DNA of 64,000 nt from Chara braunii (taxonomy: Eukaryota; Plantae; Charophyceae). The notes under the pieces were generated by a model. The model was not told the origin of the DNA and did no database searches. It was given only the letters and a program-made list of their open reading frames with translations. A program made the position numbers and the translations under genes. Positions 10,632 to 46,808 of this stretch are shown in pieces. The DNA lies in NCBI GenBank assembly GCA_003427395.1, contig BFEA01000018.1:2187722-2251721 (forward strand), in the 5' to 3' direction. Position 1 is the stretch's first letter, and each line of letters starts with the position of its first letter.

Positions 10632-13600
10632 TACCCTCTGAGAACCTCCGTATTCTGACTGGCTAATTCTGTGCTGAGGAGCACAGAGGCAAAAAGTACA
10701 AAAAGAACTGTGAACCGCTCGCTCTGGTAGTCTGGCTGGTTAATTCTTAGGTAGCGAAAGAACCGGCGCACCGTCGGAGGTGGGAAACTCCTCGGGTCTG
10801 TTGACTCTGTTATGTATTGTATTGTAAGAAAGAATGAAATTCAAATGATGTGGAATGAGGACATTGAACATTTTGAAGGTAGCACTTTTAGCAGCGCTCA
10901 AATTGGCCCACTAAAACGGGTCGTCCTTTCAATAACCTGAAGAAATTAAGAGGAAGAAACAAAATCGGAACTGAGCGCTGAGGCTGCTGTAGTGACTCTA
11001 ATGGTAAAGGCAGGCTTTGTTGTTGTTGTTGTTGTTTTTTGGCCGTCCTAACCTGGCGGGCGGGCGGGCGCACAGATTTAAGGTCTATTTTTAGTCGAGA
11101 CCTCTCTTCACTCCAGCTCGTCTGCACTCATTTCTGACTGCCGTTTTCCTTTTTTTTTTTTTTTTTGGTTCGTACGACTGTCATTTCCTGAACTTCCGTA
11201 TATGCCAAAGAAAGCGGACCTAAAAGAAAAGGAAAAGGAAGCCGAAGCTTGAGCTTTCTACGTATAGTAAAATGAGTGATACCTTTTTTTTTTTTTTTAG
11301 TGATAACTTTGATTTGATCATGGGCTCCACTACGCAAAATGACTACCACAATCATTTACAGAGAACAATGAGGATCGTGACGGTGTGGCGGAAATGGGAG
11401 TCCTCGCAGCCTACCTTGCATGGCGCTGCAGCTACCAAGTTGTGGACTAGAATGTGCGAAAACTCTTGCATGTGGTCATGTGTGTCGACTGCATACTACC
11501 GGGGTTGGAATAGGTATCGGCCGCGAAATCGACTGGGCGTACTCTTTAGTTTGTACGTCCCACGAGGGGGTCAGAGTGACGATTTGAACAGGCCCCTCAG
11601 CGTAGTAATACCAGAGAACCCCGCACCAGGGCATGGGAAAAAGATTGTTGAACGGATCATGAATTTCAATCCTGATGGAATCCAATGAATACGATAAGGT
11701 TAGGGGATCCCCCCTCTTCGACAACCCGGAAAAAAAGAGGAAAGGCTGAGGACGTTCTTAGTTCCGATGCATTGGCGTGATTTGAGAGAGAACTGCAGGT
11801 AGGCTACTGCGGAGGAGGTAGAAAAGACAATAGAGCGCAACGGTAGACTGGATAACCGTTGAGATGGGCGACTACACAACACTCTACATGCATCTGGACG
11901 CTTTCTGGACCCGATGCATTCAAAATGTTGGACTCGTCGGAATGCACCTGGTCCGTAAATCCTCCAGATGCATGTCGAGTGTTGAGTAGTGGAGCGAGGC
12001 CCTGTGTAGTATGTGGTGTCACCCCCCCGGGTCGCGGTTAAGCATCAACGACTTCCCGACAATTGATACCCTGAGGTGGTGGGGACCACCAACCACTGCC
12101 CTCAAGGTACCGGTGACGAAAATGAATGCAGAGTAACCCGCATTCGCACCAGACGGAATTCTACAGACTGCAGGTTCACACCCCCCCATTTAGCCTTTGA
12201 CCGGGGTATTCAAGGTCTTGAAAGCTCCCACGGGGATCTTTTGCCATTTTCCCAAGGCTGGGCTGGTAATGAGGACGTGTCTCACCATAGCCCTCTATAT
12301 GGGCGGGTAATGAGGACGTGTCTCACCCACTTCCCTTTTTAAAAATTTCCAATTTGGACGTGTCTCACCCACTTCCCTTTTTAAAAATTTCCAATATAAA
12401 AAGGCCCGGCTCTATTGCCCAACATACTAAAAGTGAAGTACCCAAAAAAAAAAAAAAAAAAAAAAATTTGAAGTGCATGGACGTCCGTTAAAACTGGAAC
12501 GATACAGAGAAAGATTAGCATGGCCCGTGCGCAAGGATGACACGTATAAATCGAGAAACGGTAAAAAGGAAAAGAAAAGTACATGGACCTGCTCATGGTC
12601 CGATGCATCAAGAATGCTTGAACAGTCCGAATGTATCCGGCTGACAATGCGGTCCAGATACACGCAGAAGCTTGTGTAACGGAGCCAGGCTAATAGAAGG
12701 GGTAGCTCCTAACGTAATTCGTCTTCGCCCGACTCGATCCGGATTTGAATTTATGATCTTTTTGCTAACAGTTACGTGTGCGTTCTTTTTTCTTTTTTTT
12801 CTTTTTTCTTTTTTTTTTCTGTTTTTTTAACGTGTGCGTTCCATTCAGCCACATGAACTGGGTGCGAGACGACTTCACATCGCAACACCAAGGGACATGC
12901 GGCCTCGCTCCGCTACACTCGAAATGTGCAGAACGAGAGTGAATCCGCTAGACCATGGAAAGATACGCCGCCATGAGTTTTGTCTTTTGTGCATGTCGAG
13001 AGCAGTGGAGCGAGGCCCATGGTCCACCCACATCTTCACCGTCAATGCGGCCCCGATCTTCTTGCGCAGGGGCCATGCTAATCTTCTCTGTATCGTTCTA
13101 AGGGCCAGATCCCACTGGCAAAGAGGGTTGGACGAAATGTCTGAATCTGGACGTGTTTGTGGACAGGTGCGAAAAATTGTGATTGATCTACATTTCTGCA
13201 CCTCTGCGTGGAGCACGTCCAGATTCAGACATTTTTTCCAATCCTCTTCGCCAGTGGGATCTGGCCCTAACTTTAATGAATGTCCCGAAGGACTTGGCCC
13301 CGGCTTGTGGGATTGTCTGTGTGCGCACAGTGTTTTTTTTTTTTTTTTTTTTTTTTTGTTCCCGGGCCGTGAACAGTTGGGTATAGCTTCACTGATGTTG
13401 CGGGCCTGTCATTCTCTTATTATTAAACAGCCTTTTTTATTTATTTTAGCCTGGGAATATTGACTGGCTTGCTTACTGTAGATCTGGACAATGGTCTGAA
13501 GAAGTCTGGCTATGAAGCAGAAGTATAGGAATAGGAAGAGGGAACAGACAGGCCCTCTCAGCAACTAGCTGTCAAGTAGGAGTGGTCAGCAAGGCCTGAG

Positions 13601-16345
13601 TGGAGGGGAATGCACCGCGGTTTTCTGATATTTTGGCATACGTGACCAGTTTAGGAGATTGACAATAGGTATGGCTTGCCCATTGTGACTATGATATGGT
13701 CATGATACTGAGCGTACGCGATCGTCTTTCAGTGAGGAAGAATTTCATATCCGGACTTGGTGTTGGGCTTACATCAATACCACCGGAGGTAGGAGTTTTC
13801 AACTTGGCACTTATTTCTGGACGGAATTGTGGCCAGATGCAGACAGGTCCGGCCATAAATGCGGTCAGATACATTTTACGATAGTGCTAGTGTGAGTACG
13901 CCCTAGGCTTAGGTGTTCTCACGTTAGGACTTTTTTCGACGAGTTGCCGTGATGGATAGAAAAAGAAAAACCAAGTTATCATGATTGAACTGACCGGCCC
14001 CAGGTAATTCAGAATGATTTTATTCTGGTCATCTGATTGTGGGCGTGGCGGCACGGGACACGGAACGAAAAACGAAACGAGTGGCACTGCATCTTCCTGC
14101 AGAAAATGGCCAGGTTCACGGGTTTGCTATAGATAGTAACGAGTGTATTTTGCCACCTTTCATGGGCAGATGCACTCGTTTCGTTTTCGTTTCGTGTGCT
14201 GTGCGGCGAGACCCTGTATCTGGATGTGAACTTGGGTCTAGCAACTGAGCTTGGGCCCGTTGGTAGTAGATTTCAGGATTTGTTATGGGCGATCTCCCTG
14301 GTTGCACGTGGGCCGTGCCAGCCTTCTTTGGCCCGTTCTCATACTCTGGACATGCACAAAGGACAAAAATAATGGCCGTGTATCGGAAGATTCACTCTCG
14401 TTTTGCACATGTCGAGAGTAGTGCAGCGAGGCCCATTAACGGATGTTTTTTTTTTTTTTTTAATTTTATTTTATAAATGAACCTTCCTTTTCAATTCCAG
14501 AATGCGAGAGTAGTGCAGCAAGGCCCATTAACGTTTTTTTTATCCCTTTTCAATTCCAGAATGAATAAATGAGGCTGGGGTCCTCACAGTCTACCTGGGA
14601 AAAGTTACTTCTGGGAGCATTACCCAGTTTCGCGTACCGGGGAAGTCAGCCAGAGGATCGTTCCTCTGATAAATACTCAAAAATTAGTCTAAAGGCTCAC
14701 CCTAGGCTTAGCCCCTAGCTCGGGGTAGTGGAACTCCAGGGTTCCGTAGTAACCATGGCACTCCCTCCGAACCCATCCTCCCTCTTTCTACTTTCCTCGT
14801 ACTGCGGAGGTAGAACGGAGCACCCAAGGAACAATGGAGGTGACTCATGAGTAGAGTTTGGGCCTTAACTTTTTTCTGAGCTTCAAGGTTTAGTCTTTTT
14901 TTTTTTTGGAAGGGTTTTATGAGATCGAAGAGAAGGGACGCTGGACCCGGTTTCCAGCAAGGGCTACCTCCGGGTTGTTTGTTGAGGATTCCTGGCCTTA
15001 GTGGTCTCTTTTTTTTTTTCTTTTTTTTTTTTGGAAAGATTCAAACTTTATTACAAAGCCAGTAGTCGAGGCGGGGACCTCACAATTCGACCTGGAGTTA
15101 TCCTGGCAGCCTCAGCCAGTTTCGCTTACGAGCCAAGCTCGAAGACCTACCTACTGCTAGAATGCAAGCCTTCACTACACTGCTGGAAACCGGGTCCAGC
15201 GTCCCCTACTGACTCAAAAGGACTTTCCAAAAAAGTTAAACATGAAGCTCCTGAAAAATGCCTGCAACTGCAGACCGAATTTATCAATCCTATGTTCAGT
15301 GGTCTCTTTTGATATATGAAGCTTCAGTTCTTCCCCAAAAAAAAAAAAAAAAAAAAAAAAAAACGAGCACCCAGGTATTTTAACGGATGTTCCGAGTACT
15401 AAGCGGCAAGAGATTTCATGAATTTTCTTGTTCGTCTTCTCTCGACATGAACAAAAGACAAAATAATGGCGGTGTATCTTTCGACGTCCGAGCAGAAGAT
15501 TCACTCTGGTTTTGCACATGATCTCGAGAGTAGTGCAGTGAGGCCCGTTAACGGATGTTCCGAGTAGGCGGGAAGAGATTTCGTGAATTTTCTTGTTTGT
15601 CTTCTTCGACCAGGCAAGCTTACTTACAAGAACCAGAGCCTGAAGAGAGATTATGGGCCCCGCTCCACTACTCACGAAATGTGCAAAATGAGAATGAATG
15701 TTCTGCTACCACATGGTAAGATACACCGCCATATGTTTTGTCGTTAGTGCATGCGGTGAGTAGTGGAGCAAGGAGGCCCTATGTGGTCCACGATTGACAA
15801 TGGATCAGATATGAAACTGATCGGAACAGATAAGATTAATAAATAATACACTTGATTTTGGTCAAAAGGCAGACAGAGGTATTGATTTTGTATGTGTCTT
15901 TCCTTCCCCCTATGAACATTCGTCAATGGAGATTTGGTGATTCTTAAAAAAAAAAAAAAAAAAAAAAAAAGAGATTTGGTGATTGGAATGGGATTTCATA
16001 CGATAGTGAACCGATTGCGTTCATCATTGCTTCAGTTGTCACTTCAGTTGTGCCTTTGTCGTCAGATAAAGCTACAGAATCTGCGTTCATCATCGCTTCA
16101 GTTGTCACTTCAGTTGTGCCTTTGTCGTCAGATACAGCTACGACCAGATTCTGAGCATACTTACACTAGCACTTTTTTGATTGAGCTCTGGACGTAACTG
16201 CGGGCAGATACATTCACGCCAGGGTGTATTTCCGGTCCGATACATTCGGGGAAGTTCTACCCAAGTGCGAGTATGGCCTCTTTTTTTTTTCTTTTTTTTT
16301 TCTTCAGTCGATCCAAAAACAATAAATGTCCTTCGGGACATCCGT

Positions 16346-16377
<32 letters not shown>

Positions 16378-19300
16378 GGCCCCTGCGCAAGGATGACACA
16401 CATAAATAGAGATATGGAAAGAGACACCGCCATTATTTTTGTCTTTTGTGCATGTCGAGAGTCGTGGAGACCCCCGATGGGCCCCGTGGTTAGACCCGCC
16501 GGCCTTGGAGGGTTCTCTGTACACCAGAGCCCAAGTCCCACTTGCAGCGTTGAGTTTCCTCAGCGCCTGAATCTGGATGTGTTTGTGAAGATGTGCGGTT
16601 GAGGAAACTCGATGCCATTTCTGCACATATCCACAAACATGTCCATATTCAGACGTTGAGGAAACCCAACGCTGCTGGTGGGACTTGGCCCTAGTTGCCG
16701 AGCTGGTCTCATAGTAGGAGCGCCCCTCAGCCTGGTCTTCAAAGAATCTAAAAGTCGTTCTGTGAAAAAAAAAAAAAAGCCGTTCTGGAGAATGTTGGTT
16801 TGCCGAGCTCGTCTGCATTGTGTTGAAGTAGGGCCATCGGTCTTGTCAGTGGGATCAGTGATTTCCTTACTCTTTTACCCCTGTTTACCTGAGCTTGATT
16901 ATTTATTGGGAGATTATGTTATTTGGATAGGAGATGGGACGGTGGACCCGATTTCCAGCTCAGGCCTATCTGGGTAATGGCCCCAGCCCAGTCTCTCTGG
17001 GTTCTTTGTGAGGATTCCTGGGGCCAAGTCCCACGTACCCGAATTCTCAATTTCTGACCATAGATTAGGAAGATCAGCAGTCAGAAACCAAGAATCAGCA
17101 TAAGTGGGACTTGACCCCCCCCTCTCTTGGTTTCAACTTGTTAATGAATTGTTGAGTCTTCCAAAAAAAAAGAGATGGAGAAAACTGATTGGGACAGATA
17201 CTACACTTGGTCTTAGCCAAAAGGCCGAGAAAGGTATTATGCCCTCACGTTTCAGGATGTCGTCGTCGTAGAGTGAGTGTGAAGCTCGCCACGGGAGAGG
17301 CGAGGTAGAGGGGAGGTAGAGGGGAGGTAAAGGGAAGGTAGAGGAGAGGTAGAGATTTGGCAACATTAGTAGAGAGTGACCAAAGAAAAGAAATAGGCTA
17401 AAAGCCCAAACTTTGACTGGTTATGAAATGACTGCGAAGAGGATGTAATGCTTCCTTTGGTTGAAAACCGCATCCTCTTTATTTTCCCTCCTCTTTTTTT
17501 TTTCTTTTTTTATGGTCCGATCGACCGCAGACCAGATATGAAACTGATAAGAAACAGGTACATGTGAAGTCAATTCACAATTATTTTATTCTGTTCATCT
17601 GATTGTATCTGGATTCAAACTTGGGTCTGTATTTCAACAGTTCATGGGTGTACCAACTGAGCTAGGCTCATTGGTTGTGGCGGCAATTCTGTCATGGCCT
17701 ACGCGCGCGATTTCACTTTCCTAAAATGTATCTGACTGCAATCATGGCCAGACTTGGATGCAGCTGACGGCAATCATGTACAGAGCTCGGTCAAAAAAGT
17801 CCTTGTGTGATGAGTACGCCTTCAGTGGGGCCTGCTTTTCTGGAAAAGGCTAGGAAAAGCAAAGTGAACCTCGTTTTCGTTTCGTTTCCGCATGAAGTGC
17901 TTTGAATCTCTTACTGCTGTTGTAGATCTGTGGGCTCGAGGGTGGAACAAGTGTCCATTCCATTTAGGTGTTCCTGACCACCAATACTTTTCTCAGGCAA
18001 AGTAGAGAGCACAATCCGACTGAGGGGCCCAGCTGAGGGCACGGTCACACTAGGACTTAGAATCCCAAAACACTAAAAAAATGGTCCTCGGGGCAGTCAC
18101 ACCCCAGTTGTATTCTCCCAAATTCCCTATTCGGGGTACCATTTGTCAGGGGCCTGGGAAGCCGCGGGTTATTAAGGGAATTTGTGGTAACCTCGGGAGG
18201 TTACCGCAAAATCCGTTTCTTTTTCCCAATTGGCATTGCAAAATGAAAGACAAATCGAAGTATACAATTTTGGTGGCTAAACAATTGATAAAGGGCGAAG
18301 TGGCCGCCCTAAAGAGGGGGGGGGGGGGAGAATGAACAGGAAAACATAGACAGGAAATGCGGTCTCGTGGTGTGACTGCAGCACTCGAAGAGGACCCAAA
18401 ATCCAGGCCACAGCGACCTTGTCTTTTGCGATCTGGGGAAGCAGTGTGACTGCCCTCGCCGCTATTTTCCCCAATCAGACATAACCCATTTGTCTCGGTA
18501 TTTCTTACCTTGGAAACCAAGCCAAGTTTGATTCTCAGGGAAGTACTTATGCTTGATTCTTTGTGGACCCCAGGTAGGGTGTCTACGAAAGGCCCATGCA
18601 CGAAGTTGTTGAAATATCCGGAAATCCATACCTTGTCTTTTGCGATCTGGGGAAGCAGTGTGACTGCCCTCGCCACTATTTTCCCCAGTCAGGCATTTCC
18701 GTTGTATAAGAAAAAAATGTGCTTTTTGATATGCAGTGTGAGTGTGCCCTCAGTTGGTACACCCAAGAACTGTTGAAGTACAGACCTGAGTTCAAATCCA
18801 AATGGAACTAGACGAGTGAGGACTCGGAACTAGATGAGTGATCTTCCACAATGAGGTCTACTCGAAACAGAAGCAAATTCAGATGATGAAAACGCGACTT
18901 TGCCTCACTTTCCTATGGGAATGGGAAAGGAGTCAAGGAAAGGGAAGTAATGGACTTACGTGTATCTTTCCCAGCTATTTTTTGGAGATGCGGCTCATTA
19001 ACGGCCACAGCTTCTGTGACCGGGCCGCTGTTGATAAATCTCATTGGTGGCCGTTGTTGTGTTTTGGGCCTCCAAAAGTCTCGGTGAGGGGCCCACGGCC
19101 GATGTGTGGGTGAGGTACTGGTGGTTTAAGGGGTATAGAAAAGAAAGAAGGATAAAAAGGAAAAGAAAAAGAACGAGCCTGGCTCAGTTGGTACACCCAT
19201 GAGCTGTGGAAATATGCACCCGCGCCCCTGCTCCACTTGAGGTTTAGTTCTGGTTTCAGGTATCCATGGGTAGATCTCAAAATCTCGTGGCTGCAGTGTG

Positions 19301-25100: not shown

Positions 25101-28100
25101 GCTCCAATGGCCAAGCTGCTGGCTATTTCAGCAGTTCTTGTGTGTAGCAACTGAACTAGCCCTGAGGGTCTCCAGCCCCTTCTAAATATCATTCCAATGG
25201 CCAAGCAGCCTGCATTTCCCAATATCCTGGACTGGGTCAGTTGGTGGTCTTAATGATCCTCATTTTGGTGCCCTGTGTATGTCTGAAACTTCTTCAGTGT
25301 TCTACAGTGAGTAGTGTTCCGAATGGGCTGCATTCTGGCATTATCTCGTCAGACATCTGTCCATGCCTCTGAACTTCTAGAGGGCGGGACCGTGGTATTC
25401 CCTATTTCAGATCCTGGGATGCCTCTTCTTTTCCGGAACCATACAGTTTAGGCCTGTTGCATAGGACTAGTTACCTGTTGGCTTACTGGATAGTGGGATG
25501 TATGATCCCCTGACTTGGATGTGCTTGTGGGCCATTCCTTCCCGGAATGAGCCAATTCGACTATTATCTACTTCTTCTATGTACTTCTACTATCCTTATA
25601 AAATCAGCAAACCGGTCACATGTGATGGGCCCACGCGAGACTCTGCCCTGTGTTGGGAAAGGGTGCGGGACAGGAGCGGGTGCCGCTCGGGAAGTTAGGA
25701 ATCTTTGGGCGGGCAGCCTGTGTGAACATGCGTGTTCGAATTCAAGTACATAGGCTTCATTGGGCGGTGTAGCTACAGCATAGGGCCCCATTCCATACTC
25801 TCCACATGCACAAAAAGACAACATGGCCGTGTACCGTTCCATGCTCTAGCGGAGGATTCAGGGCCCTCGCGCCACCAACATCGAAAATGAAAATTTCGGT
25901 ATCTCCTCATTACCACACAGAGTGTCGAGGCGGATGGTGTGGAAAACCATTGACATCTGTCAAAGAGAAGGATTCGACATGAGTAGAAGACGCCCGCCTG
26001 CTATGGCCCAAAATTTGACACCCCCAGTGGGAGGTAGTGAAACCAGGGCCGTTTTCGACGGCTCAGCGTTGATGGAAGCATGTCTTGTTTGAAATCCCAG
26101 CGTCCGGCCTCGACATCCCTTGCATTCGAATTAGTTGTGTGGCAAAGGCGGGTATTTGTGGAGAAGACCAATGTCAAAAAATGCCAAGGAAGGCCCCCCC
26201 AGTTTGCCACTCGATTGCCTTCCTCCCTCAGCAAATCCCCAGACCTCTCTACAAGGCCTCACACTCCTGCCATTTGCAGGTTACAAGGCAATGCCCCAGC
26301 TTGGCAGTTTGGAGTAGTGGAGTGAGGCACTTTTTTGTCGCCCACTTTTAGGCGTGCTGTTGTGCCGCGCTCCAGTACTCTCCCAATGTGCAAAGTGGCT
26401 CACACAGCTGGCAGGTGTTCGGCGTGAGGGGGCCTCGCTCTCCTCGCCCCACTATTCTCAAAATGTGCAAAAAGGGAATGAATCTTCCGCTAGAATATGG
26501 GAAGATGAACAGCAATGTTTTTCGTTGTTGGTGCATGTAGTGAGTGTAGAGTGGCGAATGAAGGCCGTCGACGCAACTCTCCACATGCATGGTGATTTTG
26601 ATGCGACTCTCTACATGCACGAGACAGGAAAATATAGCGGTGCATCTTTCCATGTTCTAGCGGAGGATTCGTTTTCATTTTGCGCATTTGGAGAGTAGCA
26701 AAGTGGCGAATCAAGGCCGTCAACGCAATTCTCGACATGCATGGTGATTTCGATGCGACTCTCAACATGCACGAGACACGAAAATATAGCGGTNCATCTT
26801 TTCATGTTCTAGCGGAGGATTCGTTTTCATTTTGCGCATTTGGCAGAGCCAGGCCCTGCGTTTGCACTCTCCAAACGTGCAAGATGAAAATGAACCTCCT
26901 GTAGAACATGGAGAAGATACACTGCCATTTTTTTTGTCTTTTGTACATGTGGTGAGTAGTGGAGCGACGCCGTAGTTTCTTTTTTTTATTTTTACTTTTT
27001 GAAGGTCCATGTCATGGTAGAGGGTGGATGCTAGGCCTCAGGAGTTGTCTGTTGTCATACTCAACCAGTGAGGGGATCGGATGGATTGTGACTACCCCAA
27101 GGACAGTCTTGTCCAAGGGGTGTCATTCGTGACCTGTTATATCCTAATCTTATCGCAAGTCGAGCCCTACAGCGGTGCGACCTCTGACCTCGCTATCTAG
27201 ACCTAGACCTACACCAACCGGGCGTCGAAGACACTTCCCCCTGGACGTTACTATAGGGACACCATGAATCTCGAGGACGACCCGGATACAGGAGGGGTCA
27301 CGGACATACATGGTTATTCCCCCCCTGTATCAGATCGTGCAGACGCTATGGGTGGCGAAGCCACCTTTCTACATCCATGCGACAACCCTCCCCCCCCTCT
27401 GTCCAAGATGACACCCTACCTAGAAGCCCTTCCCCAGACTCACGCCCCAGTCGACCCCTTCGTCGGAACTAGACGGACACCAACCTGAATGAAGCACAGG
27501 CCATCATGAGATCAACTTGAAGCCCGCTCGTGGGAATTGTATGTGCCTAACAGCCAACCACTGCCACTAGAGGCTTTTTTTTTTTTTTTTTAATGCATGT
27601 CATCCCTGCTCAGGGCCATGCTAATCTTCACTGTATCGTTCCAATTTTAACGGCTGTCCAAAGGACTTTCCCGACCTTTCCAAGAGAAGCGACATGCACA
27701 ATAAACAAAAATATTGCAGTGTATGAATCCTCTGCTAGAACATGGAAAGATGAATTGTCATTTTTTTTTTGTCTTTTGTCCATGTGGGGAGTTCCACTAC
27801 TGTCCAGATGCGCAAAAGACAAAATTTGAGGTGTAGGAATCCTCTGCTAGAACATGGAAAGATGCATTGTCATTTTTTTTGTCTTCTATGCATGTGGGGA
27901 GTAGTGGAGCGAGGCCCTGTTGCTCACACATAGGGCCTCGCTGCACTACTCTAGACTCTCAAAGTTTCGAGAGTGGGTTGTCGCTGCACTTACTCTCAGG
28001 GCCTCACCACACCACTCTCGAATCTCGAAAATTCGTGAGTCGGGCACGGCCACACAGCATCGCTTGAAAAAAAAACTCGAAACTGTTCGAGAGCTGTCAG

Positions 28101-30781
28101 AAAGGCGTTTTCGAGTGCCCTCTCGAAACGATGTTTTCGCCCAGCCTGCAGCGTTGGAGTTTCCTTGATACCGCCCCTCTGCGCTCGAGTTCGACGTCCA
28201 TTTCGAGAGTTGTCAGGCCGTTTTTCGTGATGCTGCCCGTCCGCGCTAGAGTTCGTCCATTTCGAGAGGCCGGTCTAGTGTGCTATGTGGCGAAGGGCCA
28301 TTTTCTCTCGAAAACCGGCCTCTCGAAAAATCCTGACAGCTCTCGAATATTTTCGAGATTCGAGAGTGGTGTGGCGAGGCCCTCAATCGGGTAACTCTTG
28401 GAACCCGATCGAGAGCTGTCAGAAGGCACGCTGTAATGCCACGCTCGAAACGTCGAGAGTCGCCCGCCTGCAAAACACAAATTCGCAAGTGTGCTCGGGA
28501 GTTGCCCGCGGACCGGCTCGTTTTTCGAGAGTGGGTCTCCTATCCTGGCGGCCAGACCAGCCTGGCGTTGTCCCGTAGCTAGTAGTACAGGTCTTCTGTC
28601 GAGTCCAACGACGCCCGGGGTTTTGAGAGTGCATCTAGTGTAACATGTTCTGCAGTAAGTGCAGCACTGCCAGGTATTTCGAGAGTCTCAACTCTATGAC
28701 AACGCTAGGCGAACTCTCGAAATATTTTGAGAGTCCAGAGTAGTGCACCGAGGCCCATAATCGAGTTTGAAATCCGAATCCAATATATGCCTCGCAGCGT
28801 TGCCACGGCGGGTTTGCTTGTTATGCTCAATTTTAATATGGTCAGATTTGATGGATTAAGTGTGATGTGATTGATCTGCACTGGTGTGTCCCAAGCGATG
28901 CACAGACATATCAAGCGTTCGAATCCGCTTGGATACCTGTTCAACAAACGCAAGAGTTCAAATCCATGTGGATTCCTGTGCACAGAATGACAAGGACTCC
29001 GGATTCCTGTGCAGGAAATGACAAGGACACCGCGTGGATTGTAATTTGTGGGGGCTGATTTTTAGGTTCAGGCCCTGCTGCCACGGGGAGGTCATTTTCT
29101 GTTGTCCTTTCTTGTGCCGTTTTCTGGGCTTCCAATTTCTAATCATTTGCATCTGACATCAATGACCTCGAGGAAGATGCCACTGAAACGGAAATCTTCT
29201 CAAGGCGCCGCTACAGAATGGCTGTTCATCATTGATTTATAATTCCATATCGTCTAGAGAGTGTGTTCCCAACCGGATGAGACGGATGGTTGCAGAAATG
29301 GGTTGGGACAACCCGTGACATCCTCAGGTCTCGAGCAGTTGACCTTCTAGTTAGCAGTCTTTGGCGTGTAGAGCTCTGCCCTGGCGAGGTGCAGAGCTTT
29401 AGAGAACGTAAAAAAGTGGGGCCACATGTTACAAGCCCAACGGACGAGGGATTCATTAGTATTGTCACGTGCATTTCCACAGTCGAAAGAAAAAAGAAAA
29501 AACCTGAGTAAATTGGAAGGAAGTTGCTTGGCTATATCACAGGAAAAGGAGGCTACTGATGTCATCATCAGCCTATAACCTGGACACGCGCATAGTCGTG
29601 AGTTGTGCGCAACTGGTCTACATGATGTCGCCTGACCCGCCAGTGCGAGAACGAAGTTCAGTGCACTCACAGAATCTGACTGCTGTTAATGTACATGTTG
29701 AGGTGGGTGAATAGTAGAATACCACTGAATAGGGTATTTCATTAATGCGATGAAACAGCAGAGGATGGATAATATCTTAAACCGCTAGTACATGGCCCCA
29801 GCCTTGCAGAAAGTTTTTGTCGCCACAAGCAAAACTCGGAGGCGCCGCGCGGCCAGGCCCGCAGTTGAAAAAAAAAATTGGCGGCCTCCGAAGTGGTGCG
29901 GGTTTCATGCTGACACCCAGGGGCCTATATGTGGTGTACTGGTGCTTTAAACCGCCAATACCTTTCTCATATGTGGGCTGCGGGCCTGACTTTGCCCTGT
30001 GCACCACAGAAAGACTGAGCAATGCGGATGTATGTGGTGGCCGCCGCCAGTCGTTTCGCGGTGGCCCTGCCCTTCCGTGTTAACCGCTGCGCTTTTGTTT
30101 TTCAATGTTTTTCAAGCGGGGAAAGGTACTGGTGGTTTCAATAGTCCTATGCTTGTCCCATGAAGCAGCGCAGAATAAGGATGATCTCTGAAATAGTCCT
30201 ATATAAATGCCATGAAGCAGCAGAGGAAGGATAACCTTGTAAATTCTAAGCACCAAGTCAACCTGGTGCCTTTTTTTTTTCAATAAACCAGTCAGTACAT
30301 GTTATCTGTGCGCACAGGTACAGCAGTAGTTTCGGTTATCAGTGAACCTCATGCACCTGGTCTGTGCACAAGTACAACTGCAGTAGTTCCCCTTCGTGAA
30401 TGGCCTGCATGCGAGAGAACTGGAAAACGTTATGGAAATATATGGAAAAGAAAGTGCCTCACGGCATAGAATTGCACACTGAGGTGTGTGAAAGAACTGG
30501 AACAGGGGTTGACTTTTTTCTCCCCTTTCGTAGTGCCACAAATCATCACAAACAATCGATAAAACAAAAAGATACAGTTAGGTGTGTCGTATTCGTTATA
30601 CACTGTATACAGTGTATACACTTAAAACAAGCATGACTGTGCCAGACTGTTTCGTCGGACTTTCACCGACTCATCAGGAGGTTGAACCCTGACAGTCTGC
30701 CCAGGAAGCATTTGAGTGATGGAAGGACTCACCACATCGCTCAGAGTTAGTGATACCCCTGAGAAAAGTGGTCGACTCTGG

Positions 30782-30819
<38 letters not shown>

Positions 30820-32764
30820 ACACCACGTGACTACAAGATGTGCAGTGGTGTAGGTTTTACGGAGTACCGGCCATTTTTCTTGGATGAGTCTTGATGAAAA
30901 AAGCGGAGGATGTCCTGTGTGTCAGTGTTTCTTTGATACCGGTGTTAGACTTCAGTTGTTTTCAGTGTCCATGAAAGCCAAGGCCGTCAGTGGAAGCTGT
31001 CAGGCTCATAAGGAGAGATGATGCCAATGAAAGAAAGCAATGGAGGGAGTACCCCTCCTAGAACTTCAACAGAAGGGGCAGTACAAGGTCCTAGCTGGCC
31101 GCAAAATCTTGTACTGTCATTTCAATTGATTGCCATCATCTTGTTACTGAAATTTCAATATTCTTGTTTTTGCTCTCCTTTTACGCTAGCAGTCTGATGT
31201 ACCTGTCACTGTAGAATCATGGAGGAGTTTCTCTCCATCCCCCACCCACCACCCCTCGCCCAAGCGCCCCCTCCCCCCGTGCCTTTATTTTTTGAAATGC
31301 GAACCATGTGTTCATTCTTGAGAGACTGTGCTAAATGTTCTCTTTACGATTTTATAATTTTTATTGGGTTTCCCGTTCGGATAGTTCGTTTTATTTCTAA
31401 TAACCACCAGAGGAAGGGCATCAGCACACCACTCACGAAATGAAAAACATTGCGAGCGCATCTTCCTGCAGAAGGTGGCTGTATTCATGCGAGTTCTCGC
31501 AGCAGGCAGCTGTGTTCATCAGTTACTATTCATAGCAATGGATGTTTTTTGGCAACTTCTGCGGGAAGATGCACTGGCGTTGTTTTTCGTTTCGTGAGTG
31601 GTGTGGCGGGACCCGAAGTCACGGTTCTCTCTGTGTTTTTTGCGACTTCCTCAACTGCATTGGCATTGAAGATTCCTGGTCGTTGCGATGTTCCTCGACT
31701 GCGAAGTGGGGTTGCCAGTTCACGAAAGAATCAGACTGAAAGTGTGGAGGATGCCAATCCCTCTGATCTCTCAGGAATTTCCTTTCCTTCCCATGTTTAT
31801 CTAACTCAGTGAGCTCTATATAGTTCTCAAGGCCCTGTGCGACACGCACTTGGACCTATTATCGTCTACATGTGGCTAGGGGTTGCACTGGACAGTTAGA
31901 GGCTTATTGCATCTGTCAGGGGAGGGCACAATGGTGCCACTCACCCTGGACCTGCAACTGTTCCCACTGTAGAACAGAGCTGGTTCTCGGTGCCACTGTC
32001 AGCATTCATACCCCTACTTGCTGTCGGTAAGAGCTTGGCATGTGGCTATTGGACACTGCTGGCAGCAGCTGGGTTCAGCTGAGGCTCCGATCGATTCTGG
32101 GGATATCATCTGTTGGTAAGTTGGGGCGATGCCCCTGAGAGGATCTGATAGCAAGCGGGGGCTGATGCCGTTGAGTGCTGTATGAGCAAAGGATTAGCAA
32201 AAAATCAAGCCAAAAAAGAAAACAGAAAAAGAAGTCACAGCTGATCCTGCGAACTCTCTCTTGCTAGTTTCTTTTTCTCTTTTTTGTCGTTTCTTTTCCT
32301 TCTTCTTCCTCTTCTTCTTTTTATTTCATTTAGCTTCTCCCCTGAAGTCTCAGCTCAGTCTCTCTGAACTTTGTATCACTACGGATTGCTTCTTAGGACC
32401 AGGATGTACCAGGTGGTTCCTCCAGTTGGTTGAGAGTCTTGAGACTCTTGAGAGGTGATTAAATGTGTAGACCCCCTGAAATTTCGCATGACCGTTGATT
32501 ACTTGTGTAATGAGCCCCTAGCAGAAGGAAGCTTGGTGAACGAGAACCCAAGCACGTCACTGCTTGGCTATGTAGGCCCGACCTGCCTGCCAGAAGTGAC
32601 AACCCTTCAAGGGAAATCCCAGATTTTGAGAGTGGAAGGGGTCCAGGTACAAAGAGAATGGTCCAGGTAAAATGGCAGCCACCCTTTTACGATGAGTATG
32701 GGGCCCCTTGTCAGCAGTCCCATCCAATCTTTTTGTACTGTGCGAGACTCGTCATGCTAGATAA

Positions 32765-32801
<37 letters not shown>

Positions 32802-35800
32802 NTTTTTTTTTTTTTTTAAATTTAATTCAGCTACATTCTTCTCTCAATTTCACCTCACACTACCTATACCTACCATTACTCCTAATTATAGTCATACAGG
32901 GAACCCCGAAGCAGCCAGAACCGTGTTCACGAGAGAACATGCAGGGGCTGCTCCCGACCTGCAGGTGGGCGATACCAGCCAGAGGACAGCCGGTAGCATC
33001 AGGGACCATGCCAACAGGACCAACCCCTGTGCCTCCCCTCAGGTCCCCCTCCCTACGAACATCAGCAGACTCTGCTCAATGCCGATCGGGGGATCCAGTG
33101 GTCTATCTCTAGGTGGCGGGCGTCACGCATGCCCAGTTAGTTACGCACCTATTTCCAAAAAAGCTTTTTTTGGAATTGAGGTGACGTCATGTTCTGGAAG
33201 CCGGCCGCCACAAGTTGGTTAAACCACCAGTCCCTCCAAGCCTCTTTTTCCCTACCCGGATTTTCTGCTCCGTGCCAAAAAAAAGAAAACAAACGGTTCT
33301 AGACTTCTAATGCAGAATATTTTCTATATTTTCTATATTTTCTTTTTGTAGACTGAGCACCTGTTAACCCACTGTATGGAAACAAAATATCTGCGAAAGG
33401 CACTGGTGGTTTGAATGGGAACCCCCCCTTGTTCAGCCTGTAGGTTTTTGGATTGGTGGATTGGTGGCAAGTTTAGCTTAAAAAATGTTTTGTCAACTTT
33501 TGGGGGGTTTTGTTTTAGAAGCGGGATGAGGAAACACTGAAAAATTAGGTCTATGTTAACCACTTGGATCCTCGAATCCACTTGCCAGCCAAATACTCAC
33601 CGTCTCTCCTCTTCATTTCCCACTTCTTTCCTCCCTAGGGGATGATGGTTTGCCACTGGTAGACTGGCTTGATATAATGTATTATGAATTTATAATCCCA
33701 TTGACCTATTCTTTCATTATTCTGACTTAATATTTTTACGAGGGCCCACTTTCACTGCTTCTCTCCTGCCCAGAAGACGCCAAGCCGGTTGCCAGAGGCT
33801 CCCAGCCTTGGTTTTCCCAATGCGGACTTCTCATGCCCCTAACAAACCGGACTCACGGCGGTGTGCGATCTGCGTTGTACCGCCAGCTTTTTTCTTTCTT
33901 TCTCATTTATTTATCAAAGAAGATTAAAAATGAATTAAGTTTTTCTTGTTTTCCTTGTTTTTTTTTTGTGACGATATATATATATATCGTCATATATATA
34001 TATTGTGACGATATATATATAGAGGGTTCAGCCTCCTGATGAGTCGGTGAAACTCCGACGAAACAGTTTGTCACAGCCCCTCGTTTGTTGTCCTCTCGTC
34101 ACAAACAGAACTGCCCGGTAAACCGTAGGCAGAGAGAGAGAAGAGGACAACAAATGAGGGGCTGTGACAAACTGTTTCGTCGGAGTTTTCACCGACTCAT
34201 CAGGAGGCTGAACCCTCAACAGTCTGCAGAATCCCCTCACTGATATATATAGATATATATATATTTGACGATATATATGACGATATATATATCTATATAT
34301 ATATATGCCTAGGGTTTACCGGTCAGTTCTGTTTGTGACGATATATATACGCCCGGGCCATGCTAATCTTCTCTGTATCAAACATATGGACCATTTCTCG
34401 ATTTATGCGTGTAATGGGCACACCGACCTCTTCCATGGGCCTGTCTTAACCAGAAGGGGTAGACAAGGAGGTTGCACTTCCCACGTACGGGTTTGGCGGG
34501 CACTTGCTCAATTCATTCGGCCGCCAAAAAATAGTTTTGGCAATGTACATTTCACCGTTTTAACATGGAGGCCGTGCTTTCAGTGTACCAGCCAGCAGCA
34601 GTCAAGTCAGTACATGACCTCCGGGTTAACCCGCGCTACAGTAAAATTGGCCTGCTAGCAGTGGTGGTTTTTAACTTTTTGGATTCACCAGACGTCTTCC
34701 ACCTCAACATGTCCGAAGTCTGAACGGGCATTGTGGCACAGGTTGTTTCGGCAGTGTACACCTCGTTTGCCTGAAAGGGACCGTTCATCGCAGGTTGAAG
34801 GCTGGTTTAGCTGAGGCAAGGCAGTCACACAGCCGGCAAGAGTGAGAAGGGCACAGTGCGATCGGATCACTGTTTCCCACTCACGAGTTCTTGATCAGGC
34901 CTTAGCGAAGATGAATTTGCTGACCAGCGGGTCTGATCTGACCAGAGCTATGAATATGTAAGATTGGTGCTATGGGCCTTTGCTCTTGAAGTTTTAAACT
35001 GTGCGTTTCAGTTGCTGTGGTAGCAGAGCCCAAAGAGGGGCTAAGATGGGAGAAACACATACCATTTGGGCTTTGAAGTTTTGAACTGCTCGGTAATGTG
35101 CACCGTAGATTGTATAAGAGAAATCACATCTGGTAGCTTGCGAGCTGAAGCTCCCATCAAGGGTAGTGGTAGTGCGGCTTTTTCTAAAGTCTGGCCAAAG
35201 CAGTAGTGGTGTGCGAGCTAAGCATTGCTTTCTAACCCTGCCTGCCTGATTCTGGTTCAGTCTGCTCCTTCCTCTGCAGGAAGGAATGACCAGGCTGTTA
35301 TAGGGACACCAGCCCCTCCTCCCATTCGAAACTTCCAAACGGAACATATCAGAGGGCAGTCTCCGTAACGACATGGAGAAGGGGACACAGATGGTGGTCC
35401 CTGATTGGGCTAGCCATTAATGATCCTATGGTCCAGCTGATGATGTCGAATAACCATCTGCTGCTGCTGGGGATGTAGGTCCGTGCAATGCACATACTAT
35501 CCTATTTTTGGTAGGGAGTTGATTACGTGTGATGGAGATTGTCCAGGAATCCCCTGTTGTCATCACGACGACTGCTGTGCTTGCAATCAGCCATCTGATA
35601 TTCAGTGTGCGGCTAAGAAGTCCAGCGCTTTTGTCTGACTGGATGTGATTGCAATGCACCCATGGTCGATTTGATGATGCCGGCTCATCATCTGGCTTGT
35701 GCAGACGAACGGGTTGGTGGAATGCACAAGCAATTCTTTTTTGGAGACAGGAGTTGGGAAATTGTGGCAGCGATCGCACATGAAACCACCCTCATTATCA

Positions 35801-37337
35801 CCACCACCAATGCTCTTGTTCTCAGAAGCATCTGGTATTCGATATGTGGCTGAGAGATGAGATGAGGTGCAACACTTACGAATCCCGCCGCAAAATAGGA
35901 GGAGATGGGGAGTGCTCGCCATCATTAAGGCTGTTGTGGTGGAGGTACTGCTGTGCAACCCTTGGGAGTCCTGACACGTCGTACCAGCAAAGTGCTTATC
36001 ATGATGATTAGAGCTGTGGTTTTCAAAGGGCAGTTATTGCAAACGTGGTTTTGCAACTTTGCTATTGTTTCTGGCCCTGTCTGCCTTTTCATCTCTTTCC
36101 GCCTTTTCGTACTGCTCTCGTTTCTGCTCCTCCTTCCGTCCTTCCCGACCTCTTCCACTTGTGATGAACACTCCATTACTCCTGAAAATTTCACACTAGT
36201 GAGGTGTTGAAATACAGACCGTGTTCAAATCCGGATGCAACCAGATGACCCGAATGAAGTCATTCTGAATTACCTGCACCGAACAAAAGCATTCTGAATC
36301 ACCTGGGTCTGTCAGTTCAATGATAAATCTCAAGGCGGTTGCCCTTTTTACTTCTTTTTTTTCTTTTTTTCTTTTTTTCAGTTCAGAGAAGGAACATGTA
36401 TCGGCTTTGTGTTCATGATCCGTGGTGCTGTCGGTTCAGGCTGAAGAAGCACTTTGCTTTTTGATATGATGATGGGAGAATGAATTGCGTGCAACAATGA
36501 TTTAGCCAACGTTTCTCACTTTCTAAAGGGCACTTTCTAAAGGGCCTCGCCACACGCCACATGAAACGCAAACGAAACGAGTCCATCTGCCCAAGGAAGG
36601 TGGCAAAATACACTCGTTACTATTTATAGCAAACCGATGAACCTGGCCATTTTCTGGCTGAAGATGCACTCCGTTTCGTTTTTCATTTCGTGTGCCGTGC
36701 AGCGACACCGAAAGTCTTCTCCGACATATGTTTGTAACGCCTCTTTCGTTTCATGTCTGGTAACTGGCCACTTTTTTTTTTTTTCCTAATTAAGCTCCAG
36801 AGGGACTTTTCGTGGCAGTGTAGTGTGGCTGTAACGTCTCCTCTAGATTTATTTGTGAGCTATACCAATTGTGCCAGGTGTCAACTTTCTGCTACTGCGA
36901 GACCCTCAACTCGGGCATAAATCTTTTGTCGCATGAAATTCATTTCGTTTCCTGAACGGGCGTGGCGAAATCAGACTAGATATAATCGATGGCGCTCTGC
37001 TTTAGGGACTCACAGCCATGCAATCCGTGATAAGGTCACATCAGAAACTTGGTCGAAGAGCTTGTCACGGAATCACCCCTTCTTTCCGGATAATCATTAC
37101 AAGCACTTTGCATCACTCAATTGTTTGCCCTTTCTGTAGAAAAGCCCGAACAAGTGGAGGTGAGGAACTTGCAAGATTGAAGGCAAGAGCTACCGATCAG
37201 GACCGCCTGACAGCTCCCCCCCTCCCCCTCTCTGTCCTCTTGTACTCTCTCTCTCTCTCTCTCTCTCCCCCCNNNNNNNNNNNNNNNNNNNNNNNNNNNN
37301 NNNNNNNNNNNNNNNNNNNNNNNNNNNNNNNNNNNNN

Positions 37338-41161: not shown

Positions 41162-44100
41162 GGGTTTGCGTGCTCGCTGAACTTCAATTCAAATTTCTTC
41201 TGTCAGAAAGGAAAAGACATGGGGCAAGAGGCAAACTGCTCTTGGCTAAAAATAGATCAAGTGCAATGCATCTGTTCTGATCAGTTTAATATCCAATCTG
41301 GGGTCCATCTGATGACATATATATATTTTTATTTTTTTTTTATAAATAAAATAAAATGATACTGCTTTTCACCATGTGTTGTGGTCTGTCCTTGAATTTC
41401 GGATGGACACCAACAGCTCATATATAAACATGTGGAAAATTGTTCCCCCCATATGGATGGGAACTGCTTATATATAAACTATTATAAAGTTATAAACATG
41501 TGAAATTGTTTCCACAATATGCTTTCTAGCAAATTAGCAATAACAATGGCAAGAAATGGCAAGACGATGCATTTGTACAATTTGGGAACGTAGAAAGTTT
41601 GCATATAATCTGGTGTTTGCCATCTGTCTAATGTAAGAGAAATTTATTAGACTTGTAGAGTATCAATAGTCTCAAATTCAAATTTAATCTGTTTCCAAAC
41701 TTCACAAGCAGCAGCTAATTCAGGACTTCATCCACTTGGTAGCCTCTCGAATAATTTCATTACCTTCACGAGCTAAATCTCTTCGCTCATTGCGTGCTTG
41801 TACGCAAGCTTCCAAAGCTACTCGGTTAGCTACATCTCCTGGAGCATTTCCCCAAGGATGACCTGAAGTACCTCCTCCAAATTGTAATATGTACAATTTT
41901 GGGAATGTCGAAAGTTTGCATCTTATCTGGTGTTTGTCATCTATCTAATGTAAAAGAGAATTCAATGGGACTGGGAGTGGGGTAGCTATCTGATTTATGA
42001 GTTTGGTAGACTGACCATCCTTGCTTCTCTGTCTCCGTTGCGGCTCGGATCGATCTGTGCATTGATGCATTTGATGGTGGATGTCACACTGCACGTCACT
42101 TCATGACAAGTCCAGGCGTTGGCAAGACCTCGTAAGCACCCACACTCTCTTCTTGTCGAACCAAACACCCCTATAAGCAGGAGCCAAATCTCTTCTTGTT
42201 GTTGTTTTAATGATTTTTATTTTTATTTTTTTTTGGAAACTATGCGGGAGTCACAAAAAGAGTTTGAAAATGCACTTCGGAGGGGAAAAAAAAAAAAAAC
42301 AGTTTCAAATAGCACTACGGGCAATGTATACAAGCTAGCTTTGGTCAGGTAGGGTTGCGTGGGTGTGTGTGTTGTGTTCGGGAACTTCGGGGGAATGCCA
42401 AAATTTCAAACTGTTTTTGTGACTGTACCCCTTTTTCTTTTTAATTTTAAATGATTTTTGACAACTGGCAGGAGCCAAATCTCACCTGCAGTAAGTGTGT
42501 TTGCTGCATGTTCTCCCTCCGCCCGCCCTTCTCCTAACACATGCACACACACTCCCTCCCTTCTCAGAATACATGCTCACAGGCTCCCTCCCTTCCCACC
42601 ATCCCCCCTTTCGTCTGCTTCAAGTCGGTGATGGTGGAGCAGTTGATATTGAGATCGTAAGGCAGTCGAGTTTCTTTGTTCCGTGTGCAAACAGATGCCG
42701 TCTCAAGTGTTTGCATACTGTAGGTCTCTTCTGCCTGACTTTTTGGTCTGTCACAGGAAGAGGGGTCAATATTTCCTTGAGGGCTGGCTGTGCGCAGGGT
42801 GGGGGCAGGTAGGGATTTGTCATGAACGGAATAGGGGTTTTGTCGTGAAATGGTGAGAACGGGCACCTTGTTGATTTTATCCGTATGGGCCCGCGTAAAA
42901 TCAACCCCAAAACGGCAATACTATGAAGATTTCACCTGGGCCAAGTGACGAACGGACAGGTTCCTTGCACCTTGGCCCATACCTCGGCACATTTGGGTAG
43001 AGTTGGTTGTCGTAATGTCTGCCGTGTCTGGGCTGGAATCTTTTTTTTTTTCTTCTTCTTTTTTTTTTTTGGGAGAACTCTCTTATTATGAAGCTGGAAA
43101 CCGGGTGTAGCGTCCCTTGAAGGAATTTACTCACCCAATACTGCTCTCTCGGTTATGGGTGCGAGATCTTGCGTCACAAGGAATCATGCCAATAAGATTA
43201 CAAAATAACAAAAAAGTAAAAGTGACAAAGATGAAAGGAAAAAATCGTTGTTTAACTGCTGGTACTGATTCCTTCCTCACCGACTGACCTGGGGCAAGGA
43301 GGTCCCGCTAGAAAAAAGAGGATTGCATTGTAACACCCGAATCTGGACGTGTTTGCAAAGAGGTGCAGAAAAGTGGTTATTATTTGTCTGCTTTTCTGCA
43401 GCGCTGCTTAAAACACATCCAGATTCAGGCACACACAATCCAATCCTCTTTTTGCTAGTGGGATCTGGCCCCTGGACTTCTGATTTGATGGAAGGGTGGA
43501 TTTTGTACTTGGGCAAAATTTGCAAAGGTTCAAGTGGATCTGGACTGGGGCTAATTTTGTCCCTCACCGTTTACATTTTTAATCCGTCCTTCGCTGTTTA
43601 CATATTTTAATTTTAATCGGGTTTCTCCATTTGTTGTCGGTTTACAACTTTACGTGTTCTTTTCTTTTCGAAAGAGCGATGGCCTTTAGATATCGTCATC
43701 GAACTGACCGGCCCATCGAATTGACCGGCCCCACGCAATTCAGAATTTCAGAATGATTTTATAATGATTTTATTATGTTCAGCTGACAGTATCTGGATTC
43801 GAACTTGCGTCTGTATTTCAACAGTCCATGGGTGTACCAACTGAGCTCGGTGCATTGATTAGGTCTTTCTGATTTCGGTTCGCCTCTTTCGTACATGTAA
43901 CAGGCTTATGTCTCTTTGTGACTATCGGCGTCGCCACACCGTTGTCGAAACGGAAAGAGAACAAATGCATCATCTTCCGCAGAAATTCATAAGATGCATC
44001 CGCATCCGTTGCTATTCGTAGTAACGGATGCATCTTGCCCTTCGCTGTGGGAAGATGCATTCGTTCTTTTTTTCGTTTCGACAGTGGTGTGGCAACACCC

Positions 44101-45935: not shown

Positions 45936-46808
45936 ATGTTGATGCAGGAGAGCTCTGACGGTCATTGGAATGTCTGGAATCCGTCATGCGAAATCAGTCT
46001 GTCATGTCTAGCCTCCTGGCATTGAGCTGTGTGACCTTCCTGCTGGAAGGTGTCCAGTACCATCCACCCATTGCCACGGCAGGGTGCAGTCCCAATGGGA
46101 CTCTCTGTGAATCGTCATGGGCCATCTACCCTCTTGCAAACATTGGGAGAGGATTGCAGGTCCCTGTTTCTTTTTTCTCCCTTCTCTTTGTTTCTTCTCT
46201 TTTTTTTTAATTATGACATTTATGAATTTTATGTACCATTTCTCGATTTATGCTTGTCATCCTTGAAAGCGCAGGGGCCATGGTAATCTTCTCTGCATCG
46301 TTCCATTTTTAACACTTGTCCCAAAGGATGCAGGTCCCTGTTTCTATTCTCCGAGGTTCATTTTTTTTTTTCTTGGTCTAAGTATCGGGGTAATTTTTGC
46401 CAAAGGCTCTGAGATTCATTTTCTAAACTAGTGCCTGGTGCATGAATCTGTTGCCAGTGACACTCAATGGAGAGACGGCTCCGCTGTGCCGGCTACGGCG
46501 AGGGTGTGGTCCCAAGGTATGTTTTTTTTATATGTTGTTCTCACACTCTGGCTGTCCTTCGTTCTCTCTTCTCACTGCTACCTTCATCTCTCTATATGCC
46601 TCTCTCCCTCCTTATCCACTATTCTTAGGCTGTGGTCAGATGAACTATGGTCCTTCGAATTCAGTTCTGAGTTCACCGACATCCATCCCTTGCACCTCCC
46701 CCCACGTTCCTCTGTTTCGCATGCTGGCTTGCTTTTCTTGTACTGGTAGTCTCCCTCTTGTTTTTATCCTCCCTTCTCTTCTTCTCTTGTAACCTGAGTC
46801 ACATGCAT

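Follow-up and report, generated by a model that had tools for sequence, protein, structure and literature searches.

A 64,000-nucleotide stretch of the Chara braunii genome (GenBank assembly GCA_003427395.1, contig BFEA01000018.1, positions 2,187,722 to 2,251,721; hereafter the window, in whose own coordinates all positions are given) was found to hold copies of what is probably a very abundant, transcribed, non-coding retroelement, the RNA of which carries a canonical type III hammerhead ribozyme and which is spread by Penelope-like retroposition. An earlier note on this DNA had proposed a small non-autonomous, self-cleaving retroelement of a plant genome, with a type I hammerhead elaborated into a non-canonical four-helix junction. 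Our analysis upheld a dispersed, non-coding, hammerhead-bearing family and did not uphold the type I/four-helix ribozyme; the term plant genome applies in the broad sense alone, as C. braunii is a streptophyte alga.

The catalytic core with its stem II, searched as an exact string (CTGATGAGTCGG-loop-CCGACGAAA), was detected at three sites of the 64-kb window, 34036(+), 34203(-) and 30677(-), compared with 0.00 matches expected from 100 dinucleotide-preserving shuffles of the window. The first two are the intact cores that had been listed in the earlier note, and the 3′ half of a hammerhead unit that it had placed near 57313(+) was likewise recovered, at 57310-57372(+), where it aligns with the 30677(-) copy. 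The latter, described there as damaged, turned out to be the best-scoring hammerhead of the window. A looser pattern, CTGATGA..GAAAC, for which 0.38 matches are expected per window, also occurred at 60439-60475(+); this candidate for a fourth hammerhead had no hammerhead model match at E ≤ 1, is probably a chance occurrence and was set aside.

The whole window was searched with structural models, and overlapping matches of other, lower-scoring families of the hammerhead clan were removed. RF00008, the Rfam model of the type III hammerhead (curated gathering threshold 48.5 bits), matched over its full length (model positions 1-54) at 30698->30644(-) with 48.1 bits (E = 1.7e-7) and at 34225->34169(-) with 45.9 bits (E = 7.4e-7). 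The 34036(+) arm reached only 29.6 bits because the 5′ strand of its stem III is missing. In both complete copies, 34203(-) and 30677(-), stems I and II are closed by loops, stem III is open and the cut is predicted 5′ of stem I; the conserved core is also complete in both, including: (i) CUGANGA and GAA; (ii) the A15.1-U16.1 and G10.1-C11.1 pairs; and (iii) an H17 that is not G. The two ribozymes, and the parts of the one at 34.2 kb, are as follows (MFE, minimum free energy).

34169..34225, minus strand: type III hammerhead, RF00008, with an identical MFE fold
34227-34219 with 34175-34167, minus strand: inner helix of stem III, 9 bp, with strands AGACUGU and ACAGUUU
34218, minus strand: U17, from the RF00008 alignment
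34217-34204, minus strand: stem I hairpin, GAGG-GUUCAG-CCUC, 4 bp
34203-34197, minus strand: core CUGAUGA, from the RF00008 alignment
34196-34179, minus strand: stem II hairpin, GUCGG-loop-CCGAC, from the RF00008 alignment
34178-34176, minus strand: GAA, from the RF00008 alignment
34155..34239, minus strand: outer extension of stem III, 7 bp, UGAGGGG (34239-34233) with CCCCUCA (34161-34155), from the MFE fold
34232-34228 with 34166-34162, minus strand: 5x5 internal loop within stem III, from the MFE fold
34218/34217, minus strand: predicted self-cleavage site after GUU (34220-34218), the 3′ product beginning at G 34217
30644..30698, minus strand: type III hammerhead, RF00008, with GUC at 30693-30691 and the cut predicted at 30691/30690

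When folded without constraint, the RNA of 34245->34150 adopted this same type III structure as its MFE fold (-39.4 kcal/mol, z = -4.4). In the 30677(-) copy the triplet is the canonical GUC and the 8 bp of stem III are perfect; the single defect of this copy is a 1-nt loss that leaves the outermost pair of stem I as A.C. Loop 1 (UUCA) and loop 2 (UGAA) are mutually complementary and may dock with each other. Compared with other RF00008 type III hammerheads, with which the family shares the full-length alignment, all conserved core bases, the closed stems I and II and the open stem III, it differs in an unusually long and extended stem III, a stem I of 4 bp, and the use of GUU in one of the copies.

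The earlier note had read the same letters as a type I hammerhead that cleaves after the GTC at 34168-34166, with a stem III of 3 bp and a stem I split by an extra hairpin, giving a junction of four helices; we find this model scarcely credible. Each of the pairings on which it was built (CTGT/ACAG, TGAGGGG/CCCCTCA and the GAGG..CCTC hairpin) does exist in the sequence and can be drawn, and ACA-GUU-UGU could make a mini-hairpin. However, the proposal needs an insertion between positions 2.1 and C3, which is allowed by none of the hammerhead models; the identical bases fit RF00008 without any insertion and with all helices canonical and contiguous with the core. In this alignment the extra hairpin is the ordinary stem I, while the CTGT/ACAG and TGAGGGG/CCCCTCA pairings, taken previously for the halves of a split stem I, are stem III and its extension. 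Explicit scoring gave -36.1 kcal/mol for the canonical type III fold and -24.3 kcal/mol for the four-helix fold, a difference of 11.8 kcal/mol. The GTC proposed for cleavage straddles the terminus of the 3′ strand of stem III and the start of the internal loop, and it reads GGC in the 30677 and 57313 copies as well as in a large subfamily that was detected as loose ends at 34067. Its U (34071) also varies in the family, with U>C at about 7% of DNA contig depth as well as U>G, and is thus unlike the cleavage-site U16.1, which would not tolerate variation. The cut is instead predicted upstream of the hairpin, after GUU or GUC, and the 5′ end of the plus-strand copy at 34 kb matches this type III cut and not the GTC site. 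The piece near 57313, which had been thought to leave room for an alternative short stem I, is a 5′-truncated copy of a (CA)n-bounded subfamily (below). Overall, the RF00008 alignment, the MFE fold and the 11.8 kcal/mol advantage favor type III, and the four-helix junction is an artefact of imposing a type I topology on a type III ribozyme.

We also investigated the family beyond the window in public sequencing runs from one organism, comprising three oligo-dT RNA-seq runs (as raw reads) and one DNA run (as contigs), mapped to 34022-34244 at a likeness of at least 88%. With 14,894 pieces of DNA contigs and 5.7-12.6 thousand RNA reads per run mapped, the family is very abundant and transcribed. 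Variants reaching at least 5% were located in loop 1 (34030, 34031), in loop 2 (34050, 34053 and a length change of one base), at N7 (34040) and at H17 (34218), where U, C or A was detected and never G; N7 and H17 were the only core positions with variation other than at CpG sites. Within the helices, the U>C changes at 34068 and 34071 turn G.U into G-C pairs and the G>A change at 34227 turns G.U into A-U; the variants at 34058, 34082, 34222 and 34237 result in wobble pairs, and pairing is preserved in all of these cases. The other changes of at least 5% were paired C>T / G>A changes at CpG sites and represent ordinary decay. Separately, about one third of the sense RNA reads that cross 34188 diverged at this point to a consensus of CTAATTAG in place of the CTGATGAG core, with G5 and G8 changed, and a subfamily or locus with a dead core is thus among the most expressed copies. 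Soil and rice-paddy metatranscriptomes contained 17-39% of the sampled words of the stretch, so the family or its host is detectable in environmental RNA; this does not conflict with a host alga of fresh water or paddies.

The copies and fragments of the 34-kb locus were delimited as follows.

34096..34244, minus strand: complete 149-nt element, consisting of a 5′ leader, the type III hammerhead, (TC)n and a 3′ tail whose last letters are GTGACGA
34022..34095, plus strand: inverted partial copy, directly after (TA)n, from G1.1 to CCTCT
34306..34341, plus strand: 36-nt 3′-terminal fragment ending in GTGACGA, with (TA)n on both sides and 94% complementarity to 34096-34131
33965..34013, both orientations: very short relics of the 3′ end (TTTGTGACGA / TGACGA) inside the (TA)n nest, from pattern positions and direct repeats
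34266-34284, strand unassigned: further relics of the 3′ end, from pattern positions

The 149-nt copy has (TA)n at its 5′ side, and its 3′ end adjoins the inverted partial copy. Reads and contigs of the family were continuous through 34140-34096 and run unbroken from the ribozyme via (TC)n to GTGACGA, which identifies 34244->34096 as the complete unit. Although the core of the partial copy is intact, this copy has neither a 5′ strand of stem III nor a cleavage site and is therefore incapable of self-cleavage in cis. Its first base, 34022, mirrors G1.1 (34217), the base that follows the predicted cut. If truncation of the 149-nt unit were random, a start at G1.1 would be a coincidence of about 1 in 149; such a start would be expected if a self-cleaved RNA were reverse-transcribed as far as its 5′ end.

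The two copies form inverted arms that are 100% complementary over 34022-34052/34187-34217 and 98% complementary over 34050-34096/34142-34188, and a transcript across the 34022-34217 palindrome would fold into a near-perfect hairpin (-162 kcal/mol, z = -23). We examined whether this palindrome could itself be the functional unit, either as a foldback element or miniature inverted-repeat transposable element (MITE) among DNA transposons or as a locus of hairpin RNA resembling small interfering RNA or microRNA (miRNA) precursors. The stability of the hairpin speaks for such an origin, as do the weak miRNA-model matches that reflect it, and the (TA)n flanks could mimic the TA target duplications of a MITE. 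Nonetheless, the arms are unequal, one copy being complete and the other partial and inverted, and the miRNA-model matches fall far below their thresholds. Opposite-strand joints were also rare in the family, with 1-3 contigs each against 14,894 mapped pieces, whereas tandem joints with the fixed 3′ end dominated. We therefore consider a foldback or hairpin-RNA unit very unlikely; the 34022-34244 palindrome arose by chance at this one locus, through nested or inverted insertion, and does not reflect the architecture of the family.

The hammerhead at 30677(-) belongs to a sister subfamily bounded by (CA)n, which is represented in the window by two copies.

30582..30795, minus strand: (CA)n-subfamily copy of about 210 nt, preceded by (CA)n and made up of a leader of 96 nt, the hammerhead and a 3′ tail with GACACACC at its end
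57310..57372, plus strand: 5′-truncated copy of the same subfamily, starting inside stem II and ending in (CA)n

By BLAST and by alignment with the 34.2-kb and 57313 copies, the tail of the 30582..30795 copy was found to differ from that of the 34.2-kb copy, and the 57310-57372 piece matched the 30677 copy at 81% over 48 nt.

Across the family the 3′ end is fixed (GTGACGA, then (TA)n), the 5′ ends are variable, and copies follow one another head to tail in (TA)n. All of the listed tandem joints with TA-type letters between the copies re-enter at 34096, while their start points vary (34127, 34147, 34149, 34184, 34188, 34209-34216 and 34241). Taken together, the constant 3′ end, the ragged 5′ ends and the head-to-tail order in (TA)n are the signature of target-primed reverse transcription with 5′ truncation. 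They also agree with the behavior of Penelope-like elements (PLEs), for which the passages of Craig et al. 2021 (PMC8557442) drawn on here report strong 5′ truncation, partial tandems, adjacent inverted copies and a 30-40 bp terminal 'tail', together with an insertion bias toward (CA)n, (C)n or (TA)n. The fixed 3′ end, 5′ truncation, partial tandems, inverted copies and microsatellite targets are all found here, and the arrangement of the copies is thus Penelope-like.

Known systems were compared with the family to place it further. According to the same passages of Craig et al. 2021, in which the topology of the ribozyme is not given, two Chlamys subclades of C. braunii bear canonical hammerheads, that of Chlamys-2_cBra lying 3′, and non-autonomous Chlamys elements have 3′ ends in common with autonomous families. 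Chlamys-2_cBra and the PLE-X of C. braunii resemble the present units, as far as these passages describe them, in the 3′ hammerhead, the (CA)n/(TA)n bias, the 5′ truncation, the tandem and inverted copies and the 'tail'; the units described here differ in having no open reading frame (ORF) and a length of 149-210 nt, and the likeness is drawn from these descriptions. MRC1 of Chlamydomonas, in the same account, is similarly a short non-autonomous PLE derivative with head-to-tail insertions and 3′ ends common to autonomous families; elements of the MRC1 type are presented in those passages without mention of a hammerhead. Short non-coding hammerhead retroelements, thought to be non-autonomous PLE derivatives, are also known from animals as non-LTR retrozymes (LTR, long terminal repeat) and as the hammerheads in the pLTRs of PLEs (Cervera & de la Pena 2020, PMC7229834; Li et al. 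2026, preprint 10.64898/2026.07.22.740005). Theirs are of type I and occur as tandem arrays with circular RNAs, whereas the units in Chara are monomeric and of type III with a long stem III, and their tandem copies are separated by (TA)n. Our literature searches returned hammerhead-bearing PLEs of C. braunii and no comparable short unit with a type III hammerhead.

The type III topology is a hallmark of plant LTR retrozymes, non-coding retroelements that, like the present family, carry such a hammerhead and belong to the green lineage (Cervera et al. 2016, PMC4918200). These are 600-1000 nt in length, carry the ribozyme in LTRs of 300-400 bp, have a tRNA-Met primer-binding site (PBS), a polypurine tract (PPT) and 4-bp target site duplications, and would be mobilized by Ty3-gypsy elements through a circular RNA. 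A retrozyme of this kind, or a solo LTR left by one, is nonetheless highly improbable at this locus. The unit measures 149 nt, with no direct repeats of at least 25 nt in 32500-36000 apart from (TA)n debris, and neither LTRs, an adjacent PBS, a PPT nor a second ribozyme on the same strand was detected, the two local ribozymes lying on opposite strands. Matches to a PBS-like pattern were at the level of chance (5 against 3.9 expected), and none was adjacent to the element. Moreover, the fixed 3′ end, the ragged 5′ ends of non-LTR style and the microsatellite flanks are at odds with LTR-based insertion; target site duplications are unreadable because the flanks are (TA)n. Thus, the element falls outside the plant LTR retrozymes in the sense of Cervera et al. 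2016, and Penelope-like retroposition remains the reading that we prefer.

Transcript depth was next compared across the predicted cut. The sense-over-antisense excess stood at about 4.5 in the tail and fell to about 2.2 in the ribozyme and to about 1.0 upstream of the cut, a pattern shared by all three RNA runs, while DNA depth was flat across the site. This sense-specific drop fits the loss of the 5′ fragment after cleavage, and it fits a preferential expression of truncated copies too. Beside this, the C17 variant at 34218, which gives the GUC triplet, was observed in 5-11% of sense reads, 24-35% of antisense reads and about 6% of DNA contigs, and several neighboring variants displayed the same strand pattern. 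The bias of C17 may arise because GUC transcripts are selectively lost through cleavage or because a separate subfamily is transcribed in antisense, and is ambiguous because whole haplotypes differ between the strands.

Several observations weigh against a cleaving, Penelope-mobilized hammerhead element. First, no pile-up of RNA read starts was detected at the predicted cut in the three oligo-dT libraries, although a missing read-end signal is weak evidence either way in libraries selected with oligo-dT. Second, the 5′ ends at DNA joints scatter (34209-34216, 34184-34188 and elsewhere) and do not all lie at the cut. Third, the cleavage triplet of the 34.2-kb copy is GUU, which is weaker than GUC, stem I has only 4 bp, and its outer pair is mismatched in the 30677 copy. 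Fourth, both complete hammerheads score below the gathering threshold of 48.5 bits, by 0.4-2.6 bits; this threshold is a curation cut-off and not a structural feature, and the E-values are far beyond chance. Fifth, the window offers only three copies, and the variants of the family, all of them pair-preserving in stems II and III, are unlinked in the tables, so that compensatory double changes are uncounted and the pair-preserving substitutions amount to support for the helices and not to proof of covariation. Finally, the eight largest ORFs of the window had no Pfam domain; the autonomous partner with reverse transcriptase (RT) and GIY-YIG domains that the earlier note had suggested looking for was not among them, and neither was a partner sharing the 3′ end.

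The unit may be either a dedicated non-autonomous element or the heavily 5′-truncated 3′ tail of a larger Penelope-like element. In the latter case the copies would be what remains of an autonomous, hammerhead-bearing PLE of the Chlamys type, a sub-variant of Penelope-like retroposition from which it differs in novelty alone. We regard such truncated tails as a real possibility, if one that we would not put at even odds: the passages of Craig et al. 2021 cited above (PMC8557442) report that PLEs are frequently 5′-truncated and that Chlamys-2_cBra has a canonical hammerhead in a 3′ position, but the minus-strand copy stops 5 nt beyond the base of the long stem III, and 34241 is the 5′ end of at least one further genomic copy. 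This recurrent 5′ end at about 34241-34244 hints at a discrete non-autonomous element.

On the preferred reading of a Penelope-mobilized hammerhead element, the following cycle may be envisaged. The RNA would fold its long stem III and cut itself 27 nt from the 5′ end, and a Penelope-like (Chlamys-type) RT/endonuclease would prime on nicked (TA)n or (CA)n at the 3′ tail and copy the RNA. Uncut RNAs would yield full units that are still ribozyme-competent, while cut RNAs would yield copies that start at G1.1, like the plus-strand arm at 34022, and are no longer able to cut; template switching or nested insertion would produce the tandem and inverted arrangements.

Other features of the window touch on retroposition and on the hammerhead motif without belonging to the family. 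At 33860-33975(+), a T-rich end is followed by TTTGTGACGA and (TA)n, giving the 3′ terminus of the hammerhead unit on a different body; this may be another element family with the same 3′ end. Beside the (TA)n nest, at 34353-34412(+), two antisense pieces of U6 were detected, with the 5′ and 3′ parts in swapped order (GGGCCATGCTAATCTTCTCTGTATC, then ACCATTTCTCGATTTATGCGTGT). In the window as a whole, U6 small nuclear RNA (snRNA) was represented by one strong match (87 bits) and four weaker copies, and U2 by two fragments, the U6/U2 matches lying at:

16328-16439, plus strand
12473-12572, plus strand
27569-27666, minus strand
46225-46329, minus strand
13026-13127, minus strand
17151-17237, minus strand
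41234-41421, plus strand

An A-rich tail follows the U6 copy at 27569-27666(-), which has the appearance of a retropseudogene, and the clustering of the U6/U2 matches is suggestive of snRNA retrocopying in trans by a resident reverse transcriptase. A metagenome scan with the core and stem II string returned 16 contig loci with hammerheads unrelated to this family, their stem II being identical (GUCGG..CCGAC) and their stems I and III different. Since this stem II recurs widely, it is not diagnostic of the family, and the 16 loci, with only stem II in common, were rejected as additional family copies or as a set for covariation.

With the claimed fourth helix gone, what remains is a clear hammerhead retroelement of the green lineage with a Penelope-like insertion structure, a finding that is useful but incremental. 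More tentatively, the family could be a dedicated, SINE-like (short interspersed nuclear element) type III 'retrozyme' of a streptophyte alga, mobilized by Penelope-like elements, in which self-cleavage in vivo sets the 5′ ends of many copies; we hold this to be possible, though short of probable. If true, it would be the first non-LTR retrozyme of the green lineage, would link the type III LTR retrozymes of plants with the PLE-derived type I retrozymes of animals, and would provide a genomic footprint of hammerhead activity in the PLE cycle, the role of which is called unclear in the literature. Furthermore, if starts at G1.1 hold genome-wide, the family would serve as a readout, from sequence alone, of ribozyme action during retrotransposition, and such a readout would bear on what hammerheads do for Penelope-like elements.

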